DNA of 64,000 nt from Isurus oxyrinchus (lineage: Eukaryota): positions 1,116,001-1,180,000 of the forward strand of contig JANJGN010000071.1 of the NCBI GenBank assembly GCA_026770705.1. Direction: 5' to 3'. Position 1 is the first letter of the stretch. Every line of letters starts with the position of its first letter. Position numbers and translations under genes: made by a program. Below the pieces are notes generated by a model that saw only the letters and a program-made list of their open reading frames with translations, was not told where the DNA came from and did not search any database. Of the stretch, positions 1 to 63,528 are shown piece by piece.

Positions 1-129
1 GTGTCACTCTGACCTATACTTCTGTTCTGACCCTGATCCCATCACTCAAACACCACGGACACACTCTCAGCTGCAGAGTGAGATATCCATCTGTTTCATC
101 GGAGCGGACCCTCGTACTAACTGTACAAG
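1..129 (+). CDS. Gene A (activating-type Siglec-like): 3' part of C2-set Ig exon, truncated by window edge
   Basis: Reads VTLTYTSVLTLIPSLKHHGHTLSCRVRYPSVSSERTLVLTVQ; phase-1 donor CAAG|GTAAGA; first ~105 nt identical to 16001-16105. Confidence 0.85.
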
Positions 130-453
130 GTAAGAATGGACACCCTTCATTCTACATCAGCACTCCCTCAGCGCTGACCCTCTGACAGTGCAGCCCGTTC
201 TCAGTATCCACATTCTCAGACCTCTCAAAGTGCTTCACAGTCGATAGAAGTTAATTGATATTTATTTGATTATTGCTGAATGAAGAGACAAGCTGTCTAA
301 AGTTTTCATCTCACAGACAGTATTCTCCATGGCAACACCTCCACCTATCAGAGACCACTTGCCAACCAATCAGCACTCTCTTCCCATTAAGTATAAATTG
401 TTGTTCACTTTCTGTTGGTTATCGTGCGAACGGGCTTCTTGATTCCTGCCCTG

Positions 454-603
454 AGATCTTAATGTCCCAAAATTCAGAACAAGTTCCAACAATGAGCTGT
501 GGTTGGTGATTCCTCACGTTACATCCAGGGACATGGACACTATCAATGTGTTCAGAGAATGAACATGGAGCAGTGGAGGGGTTCATAACCATCACTGTGG
601 AAC
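454..603 (+). pseudogene. Gene A: 5'-truncated, frameshifted half of an Ig C2 exon (paralog of 20652/21870 exons)
   Basis: Matches the 3' half of 21870-22151 but has two 1-nt deletions (gacatgga vs gacactgga; tgtgttcag vs tgtgtggcag); 5' half and acceptor absent; donor AAC|GTGAGT kept. Confidence 0.8.
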
Positions 604-2278
604 GTGAGTGTACACAGACTTCAACATCTCTCTCAGATTCGAACACTACACAAACGCCCTCAAACATACAGACCTAAATAGACACGTGTAGACACACATA
701 TATGACCACACACAAAGACACACTCACAAACAAACACACTAGCACAAGACTCCCTCATGGGTTACCTGACCTCCCTCAGTACTGCACTGGAGAGTGGGCT
801 GCATTCTGGGATTTGTGTTCCCATTCGTATTTATGGAAGAATATGGAAATTACTCGTACAAACACTCAGATGCATAGAGGCACTCGTAGATACTATCTGC
901 TTCTCCAACTCTCTCTCTCTCCCTTTAAGGAGCTACCTGAAACCTAACCCTTTGACGAAGAACTAGTCCCAACTCCTCCTTATCTGATTCTGTGATTTCT
1001 TTTGTGTATCTGAGAGTAAAAGAGAGGTGAAGAGGTTTAGTACGAGAATTCTTGCTGGTGAAAAGCTTACATCTTGTTCTCATTATTTCCGTGCACATAT
1101 TTCCCAGTATGTCCAATGCCCCTGTTTATAATGATGACTGCCTATGTAAACGTCACGCTGTAGTTACAGCCTCCCACCAGTGGTGGCATTGTAGCACTTA
1201 ATCCTTGTGTTTCCCAGCTTTTCAAGCAACTCCACTTCCCAGTTTGCTACACAAGCTGTGAGTTCATCAGAATTAAATTATTTCTCAAACAGTAGATTTG
1301 ATAACTCATTTTATTGAAAACTTCCTCAGTGCCTCCCTGAAGGGTTTACACTCTCCGGGAAGCAGGAATAGGCTGGATGTTGGGGAGTTCATCTTTTCCC
1401 AGAGAGTAGGGATCCTCAGGAATGTGCTGTCAGTGGGTGTGGTGGTTGCTGATTCTCTGTCACCTTCAAGAGGGATCTGGAGTGGTTACTGACTGGGGGA
1501 GAGATCATGGAAGCGGAGAATGATACAGCACAGGAGGAGGCCATTCAGCCCATTGTGCCTGTGCCAGATCTTTCAATGATCTATCCAATCAGATCCACTA
1601 ACCACCACTCCACCTTGCCCCCATCTTCCTCCTTCAAGTGTTTATCCAATTTCCCTTTCGAAAGTTCCTATTGAATCTGCTTCCACCGCCCTTTCAGGCA
1701 GCACCTTCCAGATCACAACAACTCGCTCTGTCAAAACAAATTCTCCTCATCTCCCCCTCCGGTTCATCAATCTGTTTCCCTCTGGTTACCGACCCTCCTG
1801 CCCCTTAAATACATCAATACTATTCACCTCAACCACTCCCAGTGGGAGCGAGTTCCACATTCTCCCCTCTCTCTGGGTAAAGATTGGAACTGTTTATTAA
1901 GCGGGGGGTGTAAGTCCATGGGGGAGTCCATCTCGATCCTGCCCGATTCGCACACGCGTCCGAGATGGATTTCCACCCTGCACTAAACGTTTCCAGAATT
2001 TTCTACAGCACAATCCTGTACACAGCGATGGAGAGAAACACTGGACAGGGAGTCCAACAGCACAATGATCCATTCTCACCAATGTTCCACGCTAAGGGGA
2101 AAGTTCCGATTGTCCACTCTTAGAGTGTTTCCAATGAAAACATTCATTCCACATTGAATCCCAGTGGATGGGTCAATATTACAGCAAATGTTGCAGTGAT
2201 ATGAAGCTTGATTGTTCAGCCAGAGTGAGAGATTGAAAGCGGAGAGTCAGTGATGATTTCTTTCTGTGTGTTCTCTAG

Positions 2279-2418
2279 ACAGTGGAGGAGAGATTCTGCA
2301 CGTGATCCTGATCCTGGGAATACGAGCTGTGATATTCCTTGTGGCTGTGTTTATCACTATCACTGGAGTCTGTGTCTGGGAGAGACAAACAGTGAAAGGA
2401 AGTCGACAGACTGTTTGA
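2279..2418 (+). CDS. Gene A terminal exon: TM helix with intramembrane Arg and short tail
   Basis: Acceptor tttctgtgtgttctctag|AC (phase 1); SGGEILHVILILGIRAVIFLVAVFITITGVCVWERQTVKGSRQTV*; Arg codon 2323-2325; frame preserved in inverted copy 60676-60815; AATAAA at 3496. Confidence 0.8.
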
Positions 2419-2544
2419 AGCTTTGTACAGCAACAATCTGGTCAGTCAGTGCGGACAAATAACGTGTGATGTTGGGTTAAGTTGTAATGAAACTGATCAG
2501 TGTCCTGGTTAGAATCACCTTCGTATCAGAGAGGCATTCCAGCA

Positions 2545-3135
2545 CAGTGGGAGCCCATTCAGCCCATTGAGTCCATGCTGCCTCTCTGTAGAGCAATCCA
2601 CTCAGTCCCATTCCCCCGCTCTATCCCTGTATCTCTTCAAGTTTATTTCCCCTCAAGTGTCCGTCCAATTTCCTTTTGAAATTGTTCATCGTCTCCGCTT
2701 CCACCATCCTCGTAGGCAGCGAGTTCCAGCTCATTACCACTCGCTGTGTAAAAAAGTTCCTCCTCACATCCCCCCTCTGTCCAAAACCTTCAATCTGTGT
2801 CCCCCAGTCCTTGTCCCATCAGCTAATGGCAACAGCTTCTCTTTGTCTACCTTATCTAAACCCATCATCATCTTGTACACCTCGATCAGATCCCCCCTCA
2901 ATCTCCTTTGCTCCAAGGAGAACAACCCCAGCTTCTCCAACCCAACCTTGTAGCTAAAATCCCTCATCCCTGGACCCATTCTGCTCAATCTCCTCCCTAA
3001 CCTCTCAAGGACCCTCACTTCCTTCCCAAAGTGAGGAGACCAGAACTGGACACAATACTCTAGTTGTGACCTAACCAGAGCTTTATAAATGTTCAGCATA
3101 ACCTCCCTGTGTTTGTACTCAATCCCTCGATTTAT
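2545..3135 (-). mobile_element. CR1-type LINE 3' fragment
   Basis: ORF 2764-3234 contains the CR1 ORF2 C-terminus motifs LEYCVQFWSPH and LFSLEQRRLRGDLIEVYK. Confidence 0.85.
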
Positions 3136-3834
3136 GAAAAGCTTATTCTTTCCATCAGCACAAACAGCAATTTCCAAGCGGACTCCCATCAGCAGACAGA
3201 GTGCAATGAAACATCGGCATGCCTGCTTCTTCATGTACGGAGAGAAACCTGCAACGAGAGATTCTCCTTCTTCTCCTCAGCAAGCTGAAACTTTTCCTTA
3301 TACCTGGTGCTCCCCAGTCCTGCTGTGTGGACACATCATAACCACGGCATTGTCTGGCTGTGTGCAGCCAACATGGTCGAATAGGAATGAACAGAAATGT
3401 GACGTTGCTAAACTCTGTTCTCTGATTGGAATGTGCTTTCTGAATGCTGCACCTTTTTCATGCTGCGATAGATTGTAAGAAGCATTTGGGTTATGAATAA
3501 AATTACATTGATTTACTCAAGTGATTAAAATGCTCAGCCTTTTCTGTAGATATTTATAGATTAAAATTCTTATTTTGCTGCCAAATTTTTGGCTCAAAGA
3601 CATTACTTCATGTTGTCACATTTTCTCTATCATATGAATTCCTGTGCCCATCTTTATAATAGAAATTTCCCATGTAAACATGTCACATTGTAGTTGCACA
3701 CTCCTGCCAGTGGTGGTGACATTCCAAAGCTGTCTTGCTGCACCGACACAGTGAGAAATATTCTCGACGTGTACATGATGTTGTTGTTACACGGACATCA
3801 GGCGGAACCTTGGGCAGTGCCTAGAATGCACTTA

Positions 3835-5760: not shown

Positions 5761-5800
5761 ATGATCGGGAAATCCTACTTCCTCCTGTCACTGCTCCAAG
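5761..5800 (+). CDS. Gene B leader (signal peptide) exon
   Basis: MIGKSYFLLSLLQ with phase-1 donor CAAG|GTAATA; splices in frame to either V exon; same LLQ|G ending as the gene C leader. Confidence 0.75.
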
Positions 5801-11083: not shown

Positions 11084-11461
11084 TTGGATTGTCACAAGAG
11101 TGGAAAGGTGACACTCCACGAGAGGTGACAGCGCAGGAAGGTTCGTGTGTACAGATTCCATGTCATTACAGTTATCCATCAGATTTGGTAAAGAAACCAC
11201 AGGTCGGAATCTGGAAAATGAGAAGATACATACGGAACAAATGGTCTAAATGGTCTATAGCCTTTCACTCCAAGGGTCACAGTCGCGAGTTATCACAGTT
11301 CCACCATCGGACCCGGCTGTCTGGAGACCTGAAAGATGGCGACTGTTCCCTGATTATAAACAACATCAGATGGGAAGATGCAGGACCTTATTTTTTCACG
11401 ATAAAATTTGGCAATCGTCCGAGCCATAACTATTACCCTGAAACCCAGCTTCACGTTTCTG
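11084..11461 (+). CDS. Gene B V-set exon 1 (Siglec-type; essential Arg replaced by Thr)
   Basis: ccccag| acceptor and G|GTAAGT donor, phase 1/1, open frame; motifs GSCVQIPC and GDLKDGDCSLII; F strand YFFTIK (ACG at 11398). Confidence 0.85.
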
Positions 11462-11629
11462 GTAAGTGCTGTGTTATAATTACTCAACAATTCACATCCA
11501 ACACTCAATGGGAAATAATAGTGTTTGATTTGCTTGTTTTTTGGCCGTGTTAACCAGCGTCACTATTTTTAATGATTTGCCTATTTCTGCTCCCAGATCC
11601 ATGAGCTTATTGTGTCTGATTGAATCCAC

Positions 11630-14650: not shown

Positions 14651-15019
14651 CTGAACCCTCACAAGAGTGGAAAGGTGACACTCCACGAGAGGTGACAGCG
14701 CAGGAAGGTTCGTGTGTACAGATTCCATGTCATTACAGTTATCCATCGTGTCTGGAAAACCAAACGCGAGGTGGAGTCTGGTTTAATAATGAGGAACAGA
14801 TTCCCTGGGCTCCCATTGCCTTTCACTCCAAGGATCACAGTCACGAGTTACCACGGTTCCACCATCGGACCCGGCTGTCTGGAGACCTGAAAGATGGCGA
14901 CTGTTCCCTGATTATAAACAACATCAGACGGGAAGATGCAGGACCTTATTATTTCAGGATAGAATTTGGCAATGGTCCGAGCCATAACTATTACCCTGTA
15001 ACCCAGCTTCACGTTTCTG
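14651..15019 (+). CDS. Gene B V-set exon 2 (Siglec-type; essential Arg retained)
   Basis: Phase 1/1 splice sites; GSCVQIPCHYSYP...GDCSLIINNIRREDAGPYYFRIEF; Arg codon AGG at 14956-14958. Confidence 0.9.
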
Positions 15020-15832
15020 GTAAGTGCTGTGTTATAATTACTCAACAATTCACATCCAACACTCAATGGGAAATAACACAAACTGTGACGTTTACATATT
15101 AACACAAAACACAGCTTATTATAACACACTGTCTGATTCTCAATAACCTGCTAATAGCTTCCAGTTCAGTCCTAAAACAACCTCTAATACTCACTTTAAT
15201 ATCAATGATTAAATGTATTGACTGTGTCCATCAATGTTATCAGGTTATCCACTTACATCAATCTCCCTAATCCTGTTTAAAATTCTTACATATCAACAAA
15301 AGAAAGATTTGCATTTCTATAGCGCCTTTCACCACCTCTGGACGTCGCAAATGGATTCACAACCATTGAAATAATTCTTGAAATGTAGCCCTTGTTGTAA
15401 TATAGGAAACACAGCAGCCAATTTGTGCACAGGAAGCTCCCAGAAACAGCAATGTGATCAATAACCTGATCGTCTGCTTTAAATGCCTGTTCAGTGATTG
15501 GTTCAAATGGTTTCTCTCCTGGTGGCGACAGGATAGAATTTAAATCTGGCAGATTTCAGAGAAAGTAACAAGCCAGTGTGTCAGGAACTGTGAGCTGCTC
15601 CCCCGCCCTCACCTGGGATTGTCAATTCAATTGTCTCAAAGTGGAAGTGAATTCATCTGAGAGACAGAAAGTCCACTAAGTCTGAAAATAGGAAATTCTC
15701 TCCTGATCATTGTAACCTCTCAGATCTGATATCATCCTTGTAAAAGTGCTTTCTCTTGTGGGACTGTGATTTCTATTTGAACTGATGCTTCACGTTATAT
15801 TTCTCTAAAAGGATCCATTCCCTGTCTGTTAG

Positions 15833-16129
15833 ATTTCACAGATAAACCCACGATATTGCCTGCTGAAATTATTGCAGGAAAGCGTGTGGATGTAAGCTGC
15901 ACCTTCAACACAACGTGCAATGGAACAGCAGCACCTGTCTTAACCTGGGACACTCCCACTGACGTACCTGGATCAGTCTCAAACACTGTAACTCAGCATG
16001 GTGTCACTCTGACCTATACTTCTGTTCTGACCCTGATCCCATCACTCAAACACCACGGACACACTCTCAGCTGCAGAGTGAGATATCCATCTGTTTCATC
16101 GGAGCAGACCCTTATGCTAACTGTAAAAT
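15833..16129 (+). CDS. Gene B C2-set domain (Siglec domain-2 type)
   Basis: FTDKPTILPAEIIAGKRVDVSCTFNTTCNGTAAPVLTW...LSCRVRY; extra Cys typical of the Siglec V-C2 interdomain disulfide; ag/gt phase 1/1. Confidence 0.9.
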
Positions 16130-16489
16130 GTAAGTATGGATTCCCTTCATTCTATATTAGCTGTAATAGGATACAATGTGCAGAGCAAGATCCCACAAAC
16201 ATCACTTGAAGACAAAACATGTCCTTTTTTATTAGTGATATTGACCAGGGAGAGCTCTTCCTGTATTGAGCCTTGGGATTGTTTATGCCTACCTGATAGT
16301 GCAGAGGGGGCCAAGGTTGAACTTAAAAGACAATATAGGATAATATAAATATTGTCTTCATTGACGTCAAAGATTTTGGGGGAGATGTAGTATAAAAGTT
16401 TTATATTAACAATGTAAATAGATAGTATTTATCATCAGTTACTCAAGGTCACATGAGAATAGAACACGGAGAGAGATAGTTCTATAGAT

Positions 16490-19680: not shown

Positions 19681-20651
19681 GGGGTGTTCGTGACCATCAG
19701 TGTGGAAGGGTTAGGTTTACAGGTTACACAGACCACACACGCACCAACAGACACACACACACATGNNNNNNNNNNNNNNNNNNNNNNNNNNNNNNNNNNN
19801 NNNNNNNNNNNNNNNNNNNNNNNNNNNNNNNNNNNNNNNNNNNNNNNNNNNNNNNNNNNNNNNNNNNNNNNNNNNNNNNNNNNNNNNNNNNNNNNNNNNN
19901 NNNNNNNNNNNNNNNNNNNNNNNNNNNNNNNNNNNNNCACATGCACACGCGCACACAGACAACACACACGCACACACAACNNNNNNNNNNNNNNNNNNNN
20001 NNNNNNNNNNNNNNNNNNNNNNNNNNNNNNNNNNNNNNNNNNNNNNNNNNNNNNNNNNNNNNNNNNNNNNNNNNNNNNNNNNNNNNNNNNNNNNNNNNNN
20101 NNNNNNNNNNNNNNNNNNNNNNNNNNNNNNNNNNNNNNNNNNNNNNNNNNNNNNNNNNNNNNNNNNNNNNNNNNNNNNNNNNNNNNNNNNNNNNNNNNNN
20201 NNNNNNNNNNNNNNNNNNNNNNNNNNNNNNNNNNNNNNNNTCAGTGCTGCACTGGAGTCTCGGTGTCAGCTCCGATTCTGTGCTGAAGGAAGGTAAACTC
20301 CAGATCAACAAGACCCTGAATTGGATGAGCAAAATCCTTAACAGAGAATTGTAGATTTACCCCTCAGTGCTCCATCGATTAAATATAATTCATTGCCTGT
20401 CAAGCCCTTGGGGACATCCTGAGGATGTGAAAGGGAGTTTCTTTAAATCCGGATGGGCAGGGTCTCTGGTGGGAGAATGCTCCTGCAGTGTGACAGTTTA
20501 CATAGGCAGTGCCCATTGTAAATGTGACATAGGAACTTATCTTGAGGGAAGGTGCCTAGAAATGCACACAGGCATCAGATACAGAGACATGATGCATGGA
20601 GTCTTGCTGTGCACAGTGCTTGCTCACATTAAATACTTGATTTGTTCTTAG

Positions 20652-20933
20652 ATGCTCCACAGAATCTCTCATTTACTTCTCTTGATATGATTAACGCTTC
20701 ATCGGTCAATATAATTGAGGGGAATTCTGCAGTGATAATCTGCTCTGTCGAGAGCTTCCCAGCTTCTAACCTGACGTGGCGACATCTTAATGTCCCAATG
20801 AACAGAACAAGTTCCAACAATGAGCTGTGGTTGGTGATTCCTCACGTTACATCCAGGGACACTGGAGACTATCTGTGTGTGGCAGAGAATGAACATGGAG
20901 CAGTGGAGGGGTTCATAACCATCACTGTGGAAC
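20652..20933 (+). CDS. Gene B Ig C2 exon (copy a of tandem pair)
   Basis: APQNLSF...CSVESFPASNLTW...DTGDYLCVAENEHG; 282 nt, phase 1/1. Confidence 0.9.
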
Positions 20934-21869
20934 GTGANNNNNNNNNNNNNNNNNNNNNNNNNNNNNNNNNNNNNNNNNNNNNNNNNNNNNNNNNNNNNNN
21001 NNNNNNNNNNNNNNNNNNNNNNNNNNNNNNNNNNNNNNNNNNNNNNNNNNNNNNNNNNNNNNNNNNNNNNNNNNNNNNNNNNNNNCCTGTCTCAGTGCTG
21101 CACTCGAGTCTCGGTAGCAGCTCTGATTCTGTGTTGAAGGAAGGTAAACTCCAGATCATCAAGACACTGAATTGGATGGAGCAACCTCCTGAACAGTGAA
21201 TTGTAGGTTTATCACCCAATACCCCATTATTCCAAAGCAATTCCTCCATGGTGAAATCTCCGTGAACATCCTGATCATGTGAAAGACACTTTCTTTTCTT
21301 CTAGCCTGACAGTGTCTCCTCTGGTGGAAGGCTGTAATTACAGCGTGACAGTTTACATATCCACACGCAGCAAGAGCTGAATAACACTCAGCTTGGGCTG
21401 AGAAATGACAAGTAATGTTCACACCACACAAGCACCAGGCAGTGATCATCTCCAACAAGAGAGAATCTAACCATCTCTCCTTGATATTCAATGACTTTCC
21501 CATCGCTGAATCCCCCACAATCCACATCCTGGGGGATGTTACCCAAACAACTAACTGGACCGGCCATAAATACTGTGGCTACAGGAGCCGGTCAGAGGCT
21601 GGGAATCCTCTGGAGGTGAAAAACTCACCACCACCTCCTCAAGGGCAATTAGGGATGGGTAATAAATGCTGGTCTAGATAGATACATCCACTTCCCATGA
21701 ATATGCAAAAAGGAACACACTGGCAGTGAATGTTACAAATGGTGACAGAGAAAATTATAATGGGGAAAGAAGCCTTGACATGCACATAGACACCAGATGG
21801 AGAGAGATGATACCTGGAGTCTTGCTGTGCACTGTGTTTGCTCACAATGAAACCTTTATTTGTATTTAG

Positions 21870-22151
21870 ATGCACCACGGAACCCATCAATTACTTCTCT
21901 TGATATGATTAACGCTTCATCGATCAATATAATTGAGGGGAATTCTGCAGTGATAATCTGCTCTGTCGAGAGCTTCCCAGCTTCTAACCTGACGTGGCGA
22001 CATCTTAATGTCCCAATGAACAGAACAAGTTCCAACAATGAGCTGTGGTTGGTGATTCCTCACGTTACATCCAGGGACACTGGAGACTATCAGTGTGTGG
22101 CAGAGAATGAACATGGAGCAGTGGAGGGGTTCATAACCATCACTGTGGAAT
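21870..22151 (+). CDS. Gene B Ig C2 exon (copy b of tandem pair)
   Basis: APRNPSI...DTGDYQCVAENEHG; 282 nt, phase 1/1; near-identical to 20652-20933. Confidence 0.9.
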
Positions 22152-22199
22152 GTGAGTGTGGAGATACATTTGTTTGTTTGTTGTCTCCGTGGTCTCCGT

Positions 22200-22480
22200 G
22201 GAGCCATTGGGATCGTGTTGTTTTTAATCCAGTTTTCTTCAATCCTCGCTCAGTCCACGTTATCCACACACCCAATTTTTCCTCTCCCTTTCTGTTTTTG
22301 CTCTCAGTTTCTCCTTCAATGGTTGTGAGGACAAGGCTGTCAGGTCTTCGTTTCCAATCTCCGTACTTGATGAACTTTCTCTCTCTAACTGTCCTGAACA
22401 ACCCTTTTAATTGCTGAACGTCTCCTCTTGATCTAAGCCACTCATTGGTCTTTCTGTCCATCCAGCTGATTCTGAGCATC
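22200..22480 (-). mobile_element. RTE-like LINE 3' fragment
   Basis: MLRISWMDRKTNEWL motif on the minus strand. Confidence 0.55.
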
Positions 22481-23700
22481 TGGCAGCATCTGTGGAGAGA
22501 AAGACAGGGTTAGCGTTTGGAGTCCGTAAGACTCCTCTTCAGAGCTAAAGGGAAGTAGACATGTGGTGAAATATATCCTGTCTAAGGGGGGGCGATGGGA
22601 CAGGTGGAGCTGGATAGAAAACCAGCGATAGGTGGAGGCAATGGAGAGATTGTGGAAGATGTCATAAACAAAAGGTCAAAGGGTTGTTAACAGTGGTGGT
22701 ATTGGATAAAGGAGGTGCTAATGGTGACATTAAGCAGAGTGTGATAATGGGCGGACCAGGGTAAGCACTCTGGAAAGAGACAGATGGCCCTCGTGGGGGT
22801 GTGGCAGGGGGAGGGGACAGTGGAGGGAATAAAGATCAAAAATAGACTAAAATCTGTGGATAAAACAATCAATAAAAATGGAAATGAATTTCAAGTAATA
22901 ATAACAAAAATAAGTGGAAAAAAATTAACAAATAAAACAATTAAAATGTATATATTAAAAAATCGGGTCAAAAAGCAGTGAAGATCGAGGAGAGAGTTCA
23001 TGATCTGAAATTGTTGAACTCAATATTCAGTCGGGAAGGCTGTAAAGTGCCAGGTCGGAAGATGAGGTGTTGTTCCTCCAGTTTGTGTTGGGCTTCACTG
23101 GAACAATGCAGCAGGCCAAGGACGGACATGTGGGCATGAGAGCAGGGTGGGGTGTTAAAATGGCAAGCGACAGGGAGGTCTGGGTCGTTCTTGCAGACAG
23201 ACTGAAGGTATTCTGAAAAGTGGTCACCCAGTCTGTGTTTGGTGTCTCCAATGTAGAGGAAACCGCACTGGGAGCAGTGAATGCAGTAGATTAAATTGAA
23301 GGAAGTCTGCATGAAGCGCTGCTTCACCTGGAAGGAGTGTTTGGGTCATTGGACAGTGAGGGGGGAGGAAGTAAAGGGGCAGGTGTTGCACCTTCTGTAA
23401 ATACATGGGAAGATGTCATCGGAGAGGGTTGAGGTGCTAGGGGTGATGGAGGAGTGGACCAGGATGACCTCGAGGGAATGATCCCTATGGAATGCCAACA
23501 TGGGGGAGGTGGGGGGGGGCGGATGTGGTGAAGGGAAGATGTGTTTGGTGGTGGCATCATGCTGGAGTTGGCGGAAATGGCGGAGAATGATCCTTTGAAT
23601 GAGGAGGCTGGTGGGGTGAAAAGTGAAGACAGGAGGGACCCTTACATTGCTCTGGGAGGGAGAGGAATTTGCAAGGGGGGATGCACGGGAGATACACAAT
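22480..23700 (-). mobile_element. Penelope-like element fragment (GIY-YIG endonuclease)
   Basis: NLIYCIHCSQCGFLYIGDTKHRL...PVACHFN; degenerate hammerhead-like core (rc CTGAAGA-GGAGTC...GACTCC-AAAC) near 22515-22542. Confidence 0.8.
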
Positions 23701-24021
23701 CTCCAACTCTTTCTCAACCATTAAGATGCTCCTTAAAACCATTAAGACACACCGTTAAAACCTCCTGCTTTCAGCGAGCTTTTGCTCACCTCTCCTAATA
23801 TCTCCTAATGTGACTCGGGGTCAGATTTTGTCCGAAGGAGGTGAGAAATGATGGAGGGAATTCCAGAGGTTAGGGTCCAGGCAGCTTAAGGCACGGCCGC
23901 CAATGGTGGAGAGATGGGAATGGGAGAATGTGCAAGGGGTCGGAATTGGAGGAGCACAGAGATTTCGGAGAGCTGTGGGGTGTGGGGATTATCTGCTGAT
24001 TGTTCTCTGTCTTTGTTCCAG

Positions 24022-24297
24022 ATCCCCCACAGGAGACGATGGTGTCCATCAGCAGATCCTCAGGTGGGATAAGAGAGGGAAGCAATATCACATTAACCTG
24101 CTCCAGTGAAAGTGTCCCACCGATATCTCATTACACCTGGTTCAGGATCGAGGGGAACACCAGCACCCAGTTAAATACAAGTAGCCGCACTCTCTCCTTC
24201 ACTCCTGTAACACGGGAGAATGATGCAGGTTTCTACTGCACAGCGAGGAACCCAATGGGTAACAGCACCTCCAACATCACACACCTGAACGTACAAT
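24022..24297 (+). CDS. Gene B Ig C2 exon
   Basis: PPQETMVSI...EGSNITLTCSSESVPPISHYTWF...DAGFYCTARNPMG; phase 1/1. Confidence 0.9.
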
Positions 24298-24649
24298 GTA
24301 AGCATTTTACTCCCCCTGTCTCTGCTTAAAACTCAAACACTTTCTGTCTGAGGGCAGCTTCCTTGCTGTTGTTTAGCATAACTAGCATCACCTCCCTGCT
24401 TTTTTCACCCTGCGCCTCTCCGAGATACATAAGGAGATATTAGAACAGGGACTGAAAGCTCAGAGAAAGAGGCCAGATTTTAAGGAGTGTCTGAAATGAG
24501 GAGAGAGATAGACATGGAGAGGTTTACGGTGGGAATTCTAGTACTCGGGGCCCAGGCAGCTGAAGGCACGGCCGCCAATGGTGGAGCGATAGGAATCGGG
24601 GGATGGTCAAGAGGCCGGAATTGGAGGAACGCAGAGACCTCGGAGGGAT

Positions 24650-25020
24650 GTAGATGCTGGAGGAGGTTACAGAGATAGGGAGGGTTGTGGGGTCTGGAGG
24701 AGGTTACAGAGATAGGGAGGGTTGTGATGGCTGGAGGAGGTAACAGAGATAGGGAGGGTTATAGGGGCTGGAGGAGGTAACAGAGATAGGGAGGGTTGTG
24801 ATGGCTGGAGGAGGTAACAGAGATAGGGAGGGTTATAGGGGCTGGAGGAGGTAACAGAGATAGGGAGGGTTGTAGATGCTGGAGGAGGTAACAGAGATAG
24901 GGAGGGTTGTGGGGTCTGGAGGAGGTTACAGAGATAGGGAGGGTTGAAGGGGCTGGAGGAGGTTACAGAGATAGGGAGGGTTGTAGATGCTGGAGGAGGT
25001 AACAGAGATAGGGAGGGAGT
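24650..25020. repeat. 37-bp minisatellite inside an L2-like fragment (reverse orientation)
   Basis: Tandem gctggaggaggttacagagatagggagggttgtaggg units. Confidence 0.9.
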
Positions 25021-59345: not shown

Positions 59346-60675
59346 CTAAAGAACATTGTACAAATTGCACAAAATTGCATCTGATGCCTGTGTCTCATGC
59401 TAACATGAAGTTCATGCACACAACAGGAATATTTCTCGCTGTTTCTCGACAGCAAGACAGCTTTGATATCACACCAGCCACTGGCAAGTTTGTGCAGCTA
59501 CAATGTGACATGTTTACATTGGAAATTTCTATTATAAAGATGGACAGAGGAATTCATCTGATTGGAAAACGTGACAACATGAAGTAATGTCTTTGAGCCA
59601 AGTATTTTGCAGCAAAACAAGAATTTTAATCTTTAAATATCTACAGAACAGCCTGAACATTTTAATCACTTGAGTTAATCAATGTAATTTTATTCATAAC
59701 CCAAATGCTTCTTACAATCTATTGCAGCATGAAAAAGGTGCAGCATTCAGAAAGCACATTCCAATCAGAGAACAGAGTTTAGCAACGTCACATTTCTGTT
59801 CATTCCTATTCGACCATGTTGGCTGCACACAGCCAGACAATGCCGTGGTTATGATGTGTCCACACAGCAGGACTGGGGAGCACCAGGTATAAGGAAAAGT
59901 TTCAGCTTGCTGAGGAGAAGAAGGACAATCTCTCGTTGCAGGTTTCTCTCCGTACATTAAGAAGCAGGCATGTCGATGTTTCATTGTACTCTGTCTGCTG
60001 ATGGGAGTCCGCTTGGAAATTGTTGTTTGTGCTGATGGAAAGAATAAGCTTTTCATAAATGGAGGGATTGAGAACAAACACAGGGAGGTTACGCTGAACA
60101 TTTATAAAGCTCTGGTTAGGTCACAACTAGAGTATTGTGTCCAGTTCTGGTCTCCTCACTTTGGGAAGGAAGTGAGGGTCCTTGAGAGGGTGGGGAGGAG
60201 ATTGAGCAGAATGGGTCCAGGGATGAGGGATTTTAGCTACAAGGTTGGGTTGGAGAAGCTGGGGTTGTTCTGCTTGGAGCAAAGGAGATTGAGGGGGGAT
60301 CTGATCGAGGTGTACAAGATGATGATGGGTTTAGATCAGGTAGACAAAGAGAAGCTGTTGCCATTAGCTGATGGGACAAGGACTGGGGGACACAGATTGA
60401 AGGTTTTGGGCAGAGGGGGATTTGAGGAGGAACTTTTTTACACAGTGAGTGGTAATGAGCTGGAACTCACTGCCTACAAGGATGGTGGAAGCGGAGACGA
60501 TGAACGATTTCAAAAGGAAATTGGACGGACACTTGAGGGGAAATAAACTTGAAGGGATACAGGGATAGAGCGGGGGAATGGGACTGAGTGGATTGCTCTA
60601 CAGAGAGGCAGCATGGAGTCAATGGGCCGAATGCCGTTCTTCTGTTTCATGATGAGATTGTTGCTGTACAAATCT

Positions 60676-60815
60676 TTAAACAGTCTGTCGACTTCCTTTC
60701 ACTGTTTGTCTCTCCCAGACACAGACTCCAGCGATAGTGATAACCACAGCCACAAGGAATATCACAGCTCGTATTCCCAGGATCAGGATCACGTGCAGAA
60801 TCTCTCCTCCACTGT
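60676..60815 (-). pseudogene. Gene D terminal TM-Arg exon (exon intact, gene disabled upstream)
   Basis: SGGEILHVILILGIRAVIFLVAVVITIAGVCVWERQTVKGSRQTV*; acceptor ttgtctag|. Confidence 0.75.
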
Positions 60816-62478: not shown

Positions 62479-62630
62479 ATTCCACAGTAATGGTTATGAA
62501 CCCCTCCACTGCTCCATGTTCATTCTCTGCCACACACTGATAGTCGCCAGTGTCCCTGGATGTAACGTGAGGAATCACCAACCACAGCTCATTGTTGGAA
62601 CTTCTTCTGTTCATTGGGACATTAAGATGT
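62479..62630 (-). pseudogene. Gene D 5'-truncated half Ig exon
   Basis: LNVPMNRRSSNNELWLVIP...DTGDYQCVAENEHG; same 5' breakpoint as 454-603 but without the frameshifts. Confidence 0.8.
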
Positions 62631-63154: not shown

Positions 63155-63528
63155 CAGAAACGTGAAGCTGGGTTACAGGATAGTAGCTGTAACTATTCCT
63201 GCTGTCAAACTCTATTCTGAAAAAATAAGGTCCTGCATCTTCCCGTCTGATGTTGTTTATAATCAGGGAACAGTCGCCATCTTTCAGGTCTCCAGACAGC
63301 CGGGTACGATGGCGGAATCTTTGATCCCTGTGATTGTGACCCTCGGAGTGAAAGGCTATAGACCATTTAGGCTGTGGGTTCCCATCTATTCCTTTCAACC
63401 AGATTCTGCACGTGATCTCCCTACGAAATTTGATAAGTAACTGTAATGACATGGAATCTGTACACATGAACCTTCCTGTGCTGTCACCTCTCATGGAGTG
63501 TCACCTTTCCACTCTTGTGACAGTCCAA
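63155..63528 (-). pseudogene. Gene D Siglec-type V-set exon with nonsense and frameshift mutations
   Basis: CGA>TGA at 63491-63493; 1-nt deletion before the C-strand Trp; retains YFFRIEF and both splice sites. Confidence 0.85.

Follow-up and report, generated by a model that had tools for sequence, protein, structure and literature searches.

Activating receptors carry an arginine or a lysine in the membrane helix and signal through adaptors that bear tyrosine signalling motifs (PMC4701786). The combination of a basic helix residue with a short, motif-free tail is the accepted mark of adaptor-coupled activating receptors (PMC4701786; PMC13107469), and each basic residue binds an acidic pair of a dimeric signalling module (PMC13107469). 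An arginine in the upper half of the helix goes with zeta-zeta or zeta-gamma dimers, as in TCR-alpha, CD89, NKp30 and NKp46; the partners of DAP12 have a central lysine, and NKG2D has a central arginine and assembles with DAP10 (PMC13107469). In the human Siglec-14/Siglec-5 pair, the Siglec V-set and C2 ectodomain of Siglec-14 is nearly identical to that of the neighbouring inhibitory gene, and Siglec-14 possesses a basic helix residue, a short tail devoid of motifs and a separate adaptor, DAP12 (PMC4042635). Bony fish have been reported to lack CD33-related Siglecs (PMC7226832), so the Siglec-like genes of sharks are probably an independent expansion. For shark genomes, a survey of 2014 reported no FcR-gamma homologue and no LRC-type receptors (PMC4016189).

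The window analysed here, a stretch of 64,000 nucleotides from the shark Isurus oxyrinchus, has the make-up of vertebrate DNA and contains long tandem repeats and LINE fragments, besides a large inverted duplication. Runs of N within 19766-38025 were left out of the analysis. The exon at 2279-2440 (+) closes the coding part of a Siglec-like type I shark receptor gene, referred to as gene A, and a neighbouring gene of the same cluster is referred to as gene B. Gene A begins upstream of the window, where its leader, its V-set exon and the first part of its C2 exon lie. The 3' part of the C2-set exon, cut by the window start, is composed of positions 1-129 (+); it reads ...VTLTYTSVLTLIPSLKHHGHTLSCRVRYPSVSSERTLVLTVQ, ends on the first base of a split codon (G129) and is followed by a GT donor at 130-131. 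The Pfam domain C2-set_2 is matched on 3-182 (E = 1.6e-4), and positions 1-161 share 93% identity with the matching exon of gene B at 16001-16161. Further downstream, at 458-603 (+), lies the remnant of an I-set-like Ig exon with a GT donor at 604-605. Only the second half of this exon is left, with two 1-nt deletions relative to its inverted copy; the tblastn match is split across two frames, the RNA contigs that cover the remnant have one additional base in each of two places, a C after 533 and a G after 551, and most of the spliced contigs skip it.

The two V-set exons of gene B, recognized by Pfam, are arranged in tandem at 11084-11466 and 14656-15024 (+). The second of these matches the solved structures of Siglec-5 (E = 5.3e-15) and MAG (E = 5.9e-15), from which it is equidistant, as well as those of Siglec-7, Siglec-8 and CD33 (E values of 5e-15 to 1e-12 over these five structures) and of sialoadhesin, and its YYFRIE segment aligns with the YFFRVE strand of Siglec-5. 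On the strength of these Siglec-type V-set matches, the locus is assigned as a cluster of Siglec-like genes. At 11084, the first V exon reads YFFTIK, with a threonine at the place of the sialic-acid-binding arginine of Siglecs, and the divergence between the two V exons of gene B is concentrated in the loops between conserved strands. A further, weak V-set-like match to the Siglec V exon at 43431-43574 (+) (31% identity, E = 6e-4) may represent an exon of a more distant Ig receptor.

Gene B additionally comprises a leader near 5762, a C2 exon ending near 16129 and Ig repeats at 20.8 and 22.0 kb. The leader exon at 5762-5800 (+), MIGKSYFLLSLLQ, is probably the first exon of this gene, and its first 13 residues are identical to the signal peptide of the Siglec-13 model of Scyliorhinus canicula (P0012). 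The membrane helix, encoded by 26535-26597, contains no charged residue, and the tail ends in ...LLYANINF...TEYAQIRFQKN, within which LLYANI and TEYAQI are ITIM-like motifs. With the C2 exon at 93% identity, the uncharged helix and the LLYANI/TEYAQI tail, gene B provides an inhibitory counterpart with an ectodomain closely similar to that of gene A. From these sequences we infer that gene A may be the activating partner of the inhibitory-type gene B.

The membrane exon of gene A (2279-2440, +) encodes a stalk, (D)SGGE, an Arg-bearing helix and a 12-residue tail, and continues beyond the stop codon with 22 nt of 3'UTR up to the donor 2440|2441. Upstream, a pyrimidine tract (2260-2278) ends in the acceptor AG at 2277-2278. 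The exon is in phase 1, its first two bases finishing the codon opened by the preceding exon, and from 2281 the frame reads SGGE-ILHVILILGIRAVIFLVAVFITITGVCVW-ERQTVKGSRQTV-stop (translation of 2281-2421: SGGEILHVILILGIRAVIFLVAVFITITGVCVWERQTVKGSRQTV, then stop). The arginine is encoded by CGA at 2323-2325 (+), within the invariant block ILGIRAxIF, and the in-frame stop is a TGA at 2416-2418 (+), with TAA at the matching site of the inverted copy. The helix has a mean Kyte-Doolittle hydropathy of 2.86 over 21 residues, among the top values in the window, where equal or higher values were reached only by translations of simple repeats and by the inverted copy. The cytoplasmic tail, ERQTVKGSRQTV, comprises 12 residues after the tryptophan and contains no ITIM, no ITAM and no tyrosine at all. 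The spliced joint, the hydropathy and the full-length models of homologues establish a type I layout, with a single membrane helix joined to an Ig ectodomain.

A preliminary description of this DNA had proposed a hidden membrane exon with an intramembrane arginine and a tyrosine-free tail, and both the translation and the splice joints bear this out. It was also right in placing the exon outside the track of open reading frames: the bacterial-style ORF in this frame spans just 50 aa from a GTG start, too short for the usual cut-off of 60 aa, hence its absence from the track. Two details are amended, namely the tail length, given as 11 residues and actually 12 after the tryptophan, and the exon end, placed at 2418 and located by the spliced contigs at the donor 2440|2441. 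Read past the stop at 2416-2418, the frame remains open for 105 more codons across the splice 2440|3159 (2419-2440 and 3159-3475, +). This extension contains neither an ITIM nor an ITAM and is related only to the 3'UTR paralog; it is read as chance or as a relic.

Contigs covering part of window 1-2480 were found in 19 runs, all of them Logan contigs that are only presumed to be RNA. Four of the runs (X1, X5, X6 and X8), each from a separate study, were aligned on window 1-2600, and the RNA origin of their contigs is argued only by the GT..AG joints that they contain. The joint 129|2279 is present in one contig each of X1, X5 and X6; it skips 2149 nt with GT..AG ends, and G129 together with the following AC forms an Asp codon. 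In X8, a single contig of 674 nt carries the joint 603|2279, likewise with GT..AG ends and with 255 nt on its shorter side. The acceptor at 2278/2279, whose use in transcripts the preliminary description had made the point to be checked, is therefore in use, with GT..AG-spliced contigs running onto 2279 in four runs of four studies. The membrane exon is real, is spliced, and is the anchor of a shark Siglec-like immune receptor. Very deep contig coverage with many odd joints was seen in all four runs at 349-435 and 1480-1914 (+), which are dispersed repeats rather than exons.

The 3' boundary of the exon was defined by the same contigs. In record 15 of X5 (240 nt), 56 nt from the C2 exon are followed by 2279-2440 and then by 19 nt from the exon at 3159. 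Loose contig ends past 2440 in X1 and X5 read CACAAACAGCAATTTCC..., which matches 3159-3188 exactly, directly after an AG, and differs from the inverted copy at one position. Because these ends continue into 3159, the membrane exon is internal (2279-2440), and the transcript runs on into a 3'UTR exon. The donor, ctg|gtcagt, stands 22 nt after the stop; read-through contigs spanning 2411-2600 are also present. The 3'UTR exon occupies 3159-3520 (+), with an acceptor AG at 3157-3158 and an AATAAA at 3496-3501, its start being taken from the RNA contigs and its end inferred. In the intron that separates the membrane exon from the 3'UTR exon, a LINE reverse transcriptase fragment (...LEYCVQFWSPHFGKEVRVLERL...) lies antisense at 2767-3130 (-), and the inverted copy contains this fragment as well, at 59914-60543 (+).

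At several positions of the membrane exon, the contigs are not identical to the window. All four runs have T>G at 2350; A>G changes are found at 2362 and, with R>G in the tail, at 2383; X5 and X6 share T>A at 2309, an L>Q replacement; and the X8 contig lacks one nucleotide at 2307. In view of these differences, some of the contigs may derive from alleles or from close paralogs; where a contig has the donor at 2440 and the variant at 3159, it belongs to the plus-copy type. No variant of the Arg codon or of the stop is among the mismatches listed for the contigs, and in the X5 and X6 contigs, where one mismatch is of unlisted position, the Arg codon is very likely unchanged.

Over 156 nt, the 3' part of the 3'UTR exon of gene A shares 81% identity (E = 2.7e-29) with 31709-31864, the 3'UTR just downstream of gene B's last coding exon, which suggests that the terminal exons of the two genes have a common origin. 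Given this shared 3'UTR, gene A has the appearance of an inhibitory-type gene that lost its tail to a stop-bearing cassette. Truncation of the tail is the usual origin of activating partners. A derivation of the membrane exon itself from the membrane exon of gene B was considered and discarded, since the two helices are unrelated in sequence.

The arms of the large inverted duplication bring a second copy of the membrane exon into the window. One pair of arms aligns 139-2439 with 62945-60655 at 94.6% identity, and a second pair aligns 2556-3700 with 60633-59491 at 96.5% identity. A core of 57 nt occurs exactly twice in the window, at 2293-2349 (+) and 60745-60801 (-), with 0 occurrences expected by chance. 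The coding part of the inverted membrane exon lies at 60676-60815 (-); Val and Ala replace Phe and Thr, the stop is TAA, and there is no equivalent of the donor at 2440. Earlier, this paralog had been described as keeping the frame, the arginine and the position of the stop, with only the F>V and T>A changes. All of these features are present, with the exception of the word only: along 60815-60676, the differences from the plus copy are at 2350 (F>V), at 2362 (T>A) and at a third position inside the stop codon, TGA against TAA, with the consequence that both copies still stop.

Other parts of the inverted copy are in poorer condition. Its Siglec-type V-set exon (63155-63528, -; Pfam V-set, E = 1.9e-8) is broken: when it is aligned with its two intact paralogs at 11084 and 14656, it shows an in-frame TGA at 63493-63491, where both of them have CGA, and a 1-nt deletion near 63409. 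The remnant of its Ig half-exon (62479-62629, -; Pfam I-set, E = 1.8e-6) is in frame, and the copy is without a C2 exon. The inverted copy looks like a pseudogene, and its membrane exon is nonetheless intact. The low divergence of the exon between the two copies was tried as proof of constraint and rejected, given that the copies differ at 3 of 140 nt and that 15% of the windows taken from introns are equally clean; as this copy-against-copy divergence is not significant, evidence of constraint has to come from other species.

The state of the inverted copy raises the question of whether gene A is itself a decaying duplicate, with an exon that is transcribed and spliced and yields no working receptor. 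Such decay would account for the half-deleted and frameshifted Ig exon at 458-603, the antisense LINE fragment in the 2441-3158 intron, the stop and frameshift in the V-set exon of the inverted twin and the 1-nt deletion at 2307 in one X8 contig, and the leader and V exon of gene A lie outside the window. It is nevertheless very unlikely, considering that the path from the C2 exon to the membrane exon is open and in phase, with the dead remnant skipped in three studies; that the V-C2-membrane architecture is modelled as proteins of 272-273 aa in S. canicula; and that the stop has changed between TGA and TAA from copy to copy and has never been lost. The membrane exon of gene A is also found in other sharks.

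The exon peptide (45 aa) was searched with phmmer against 1.84 billion representatives. There were 8 real matches, in shark proteins only, and each aligned at the extreme C-terminus of the protein. Together with two word-based searches confined to that region, these give 12 RefSeq/GenBank models, distributed over six shark species: Scyliorhinus torazame, S. canicula, Chiloscyllium punctatum, Hemiscyllium ocellatum, Rhincodon typus and Mustelus asterias. The cassette stands at the C-terminus of CD33-like (XP_072325011.1), Siglec-12 and one SLAM-like model in S. torazame; of Siglec-13, CD22-like, 'CEACAM5-like' and sialoadhesin-like models in C. punctatum; of a CD22-like model in H. ocellatum; and of a SLAM-like model (XP_078073575.1, SLAMF9-like) in M. 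asterias. In S. canicula, Siglec-13 and Siglec-14 X2 (272 and 273 aa) are composed of a signal peptide, V, C2 and the cassette, and in R. typus, a protein of 171 aa (XP_048476508.1) consists of a V-set domain and the cassette only. All of these homologue models are automatic annotations. The identity of the cassette to the window exon is 68-80% (phmmer, P0001-P0009). The ectodomains of the homologues differ, as judged by Pfam; a C2-set domain is present also on P0001, P0012 and P0003, and in P0001 and P0012 the sequence ...VQ-D-SGGE... reproduces exactly the RNA joint 129|2279.

Across 14 of 14 sequences, the arginine and its surroundings, ILGIRA.IF (positions -4 to +1 and +3 to +4), are invariant, as are a valine 8 residues after the arginine and a Cys-Val pair near the cytoplasmic end. 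The tails measure 4-12 aa, and none of the 14 contains a tyrosine. The residues before ILGIR are polar in several homologues (D, H, S, Q). A single contact face for the invariant positions was considered and rejected, for around the helix they are not concentrated on one side (mean resultant 0.06). The six species belong to two shark orders, Carcharhiniformes and Orectolobiformes. Occurrence in two shark orders and on several receptor families indicates that the cassette is old and has moved between receptor families.

This conservation also bears on the role of the arginine. Just 4-5 residues into the conserved core, the side chain could feasibly snorkel to the outer membrane surface, in which case the arginine would have no adaptor role and the short-tailed protein would be a non-signalling decoy, a co-receptor or a helper to some other partner in the membrane. 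We regard this as most improbable: 8 of the 9 residues around the arginine are invariant over four ectodomain families and two shark orders, while the remaining helix varies. Invariance beyond the needs of anchoring points instead to a specific helix-helix partner. The cassette as such is already known in the sense that it is contained in automatic RefSeq models of other sharks; a search of the literature on shark Siglecs and on shark activating receptors with charged helices found no paper on the cassette, on its reuse across families or on its adaptor.

Gene A is probably an adaptor-coupled activating Siglec-like receptor, whose last coding exon supplies the Arg helix and the short tail and which is paired with the inhibitory gene B. 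The preliminary description had read the arginine in the helix together with the short motif-free tail as the signature of receptors that pair with ITAM adaptors, and by analogy the published rule and the shark homologues support that reading. Within the membrane, the arginine would tie the receptor to a disulfide-linked signalling dimer by way of the dimer's paired aspartates, and the complex would be exposed at the surface only once assembled. Binding of a ligand by the Ig head would then produce a signal via the tyrosine motifs of the adaptor.

The identity of the adaptor is a separate matter, on which the position of the arginine has the most direct bearing. The hydrophobic core that is conserved across homologues comprises 23 residues (ILGIR...CVW), in which the arginine is at position 5, approximately 18 residues from the cytoplasmic boundary. 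This position favours a partner of the zeta/gamma type. By analogy with the known receptors, an adaptor of the zeta/FcR-gamma type may be preferred to one of the DAP12/DAP10 type, with slightly less than even confidence. The LGIR of the cassette resembles the IGFR and LGLR around the arginines of TCR-alpha and TCR-delta, a likeness that we treat as a lead only. Should the reported absence of FcR-gamma from sharks still be valid, only CD3-zeta would remain within the zeta/gamma family.

With the exon and the type of receptor unchanged, the partner could alternatively be a DAP12-like or DAP10-like chain, as for mammalian Siglec-14, -15, -16 and -H. The basic membrane residue of human Siglec-14 is an arginine. 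As that arginine pairs with DAP12, arginine alone does not exclude DAP12. Mammalian activating Siglecs do use these adaptors (PMC7226832; PMC4042635), the NKG2D-DAP10 complex assembles around an arginine (PMC13107469), and the failure to find FcR-gamma in sharks in 2014 (PMC4016189) would fit such a partner as well. Moreover, if the helix is counted from I5 of the exon peptide, it forms a hydrophobic run of 29 residues with the arginine at 11, which can be read as central. The polar residues that precede ILGIR in homologues argue against this count, as they make the core start at ILGIR and leave the arginine near the outer end, and the partners of DAP12 have a lysine, in a central position (PMC13107469). 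A DAP12-like or DAP10-like partner is accordingly considered rather unlikely, and what is left of the probability, beyond this and the favoured zeta/FcR-gamma type, goes to another adaptor or to none.

A broader reading of the ILGIRAxIF exon, offered tentatively and as a doubtful one, is that of a portable adaptor-docking cassette, shuffled onto at least four Ig receptor families (CD33/Siglec-, CD22-, sialoadhesin- and SLAM-like) and almost unchanged over two shark orders, whose partner in a lineage reported to be without FcR-gamma might be CD3-zeta serving innate receptors or an undescribed adaptor. If this were true, the modular pairing of activating and inhibitory receptors would date to the base of jawed vertebrates. 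Apart from this broader reading, the locus displays the full logic of paired receptors in a shark, with a Siglec-type head common to an inhibitory-type and a probably activating gene, the latter transcribed and spliced, and with a membrane cassette reused over several receptor families. In practical terms, the cassette, with its one helix and one arginine, could serve as a short bait for the signalling chain of innate activating receptors in cartilaginous fish. For annotation, an exon of 46 codons without an ATG decides whether a gene is read as activating or as inhibitory.

Among the described systems, those coupled to DAP12, namely KIR2DS, TREM2, NKp44 and Siglec-15, are likewise Ig receptors with one basic helix residue and a short tail. 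However, their basic residue is a lysine in mid-membrane, in contrast to the arginine near the top of the helix in the shark cassette (PMC13107469; PMC7226832 for the conserved lysine of Siglec-15). In CD89 (Fc-alpha-RI), NKp46, NKp30 and TCR-alpha, the arginine is high in the helix, the tail is short and the arginine meets an aspartate pair of the adaptor (PMC13107469), and the height of the arginine and the short tail are found also in the shark cassette. The ectodomain families differ, and a search of the Protein Data Bank revealed no significant similarity to any solved chain, the membrane exon having no match there at E values up to 10. Orthology to Siglec-14, -15 or -16 was not found either, the exon matching only shark proteins among 1.84 billion representatives and none in the Protein Data Bank.

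The closest parallel in layout is that with Siglec-14 and Siglec-5. As in that pair, the window contains two genes with C2 exons 93% identical, one with an arginine in its helix and the other with an uncharged helix followed by ITIM-like motifs. Relative to Siglec-14, the membrane exon shows no detectable sequence relation, the partner of Siglec-14 is DAP12, and the arginine of the shark protein is nearer to the outer end of the helix. By analogy, gene A would work with gene B in the way that Siglec-14 works with Siglec-5, and within the membrane it would work like LILRA, CD89 and NKp46.
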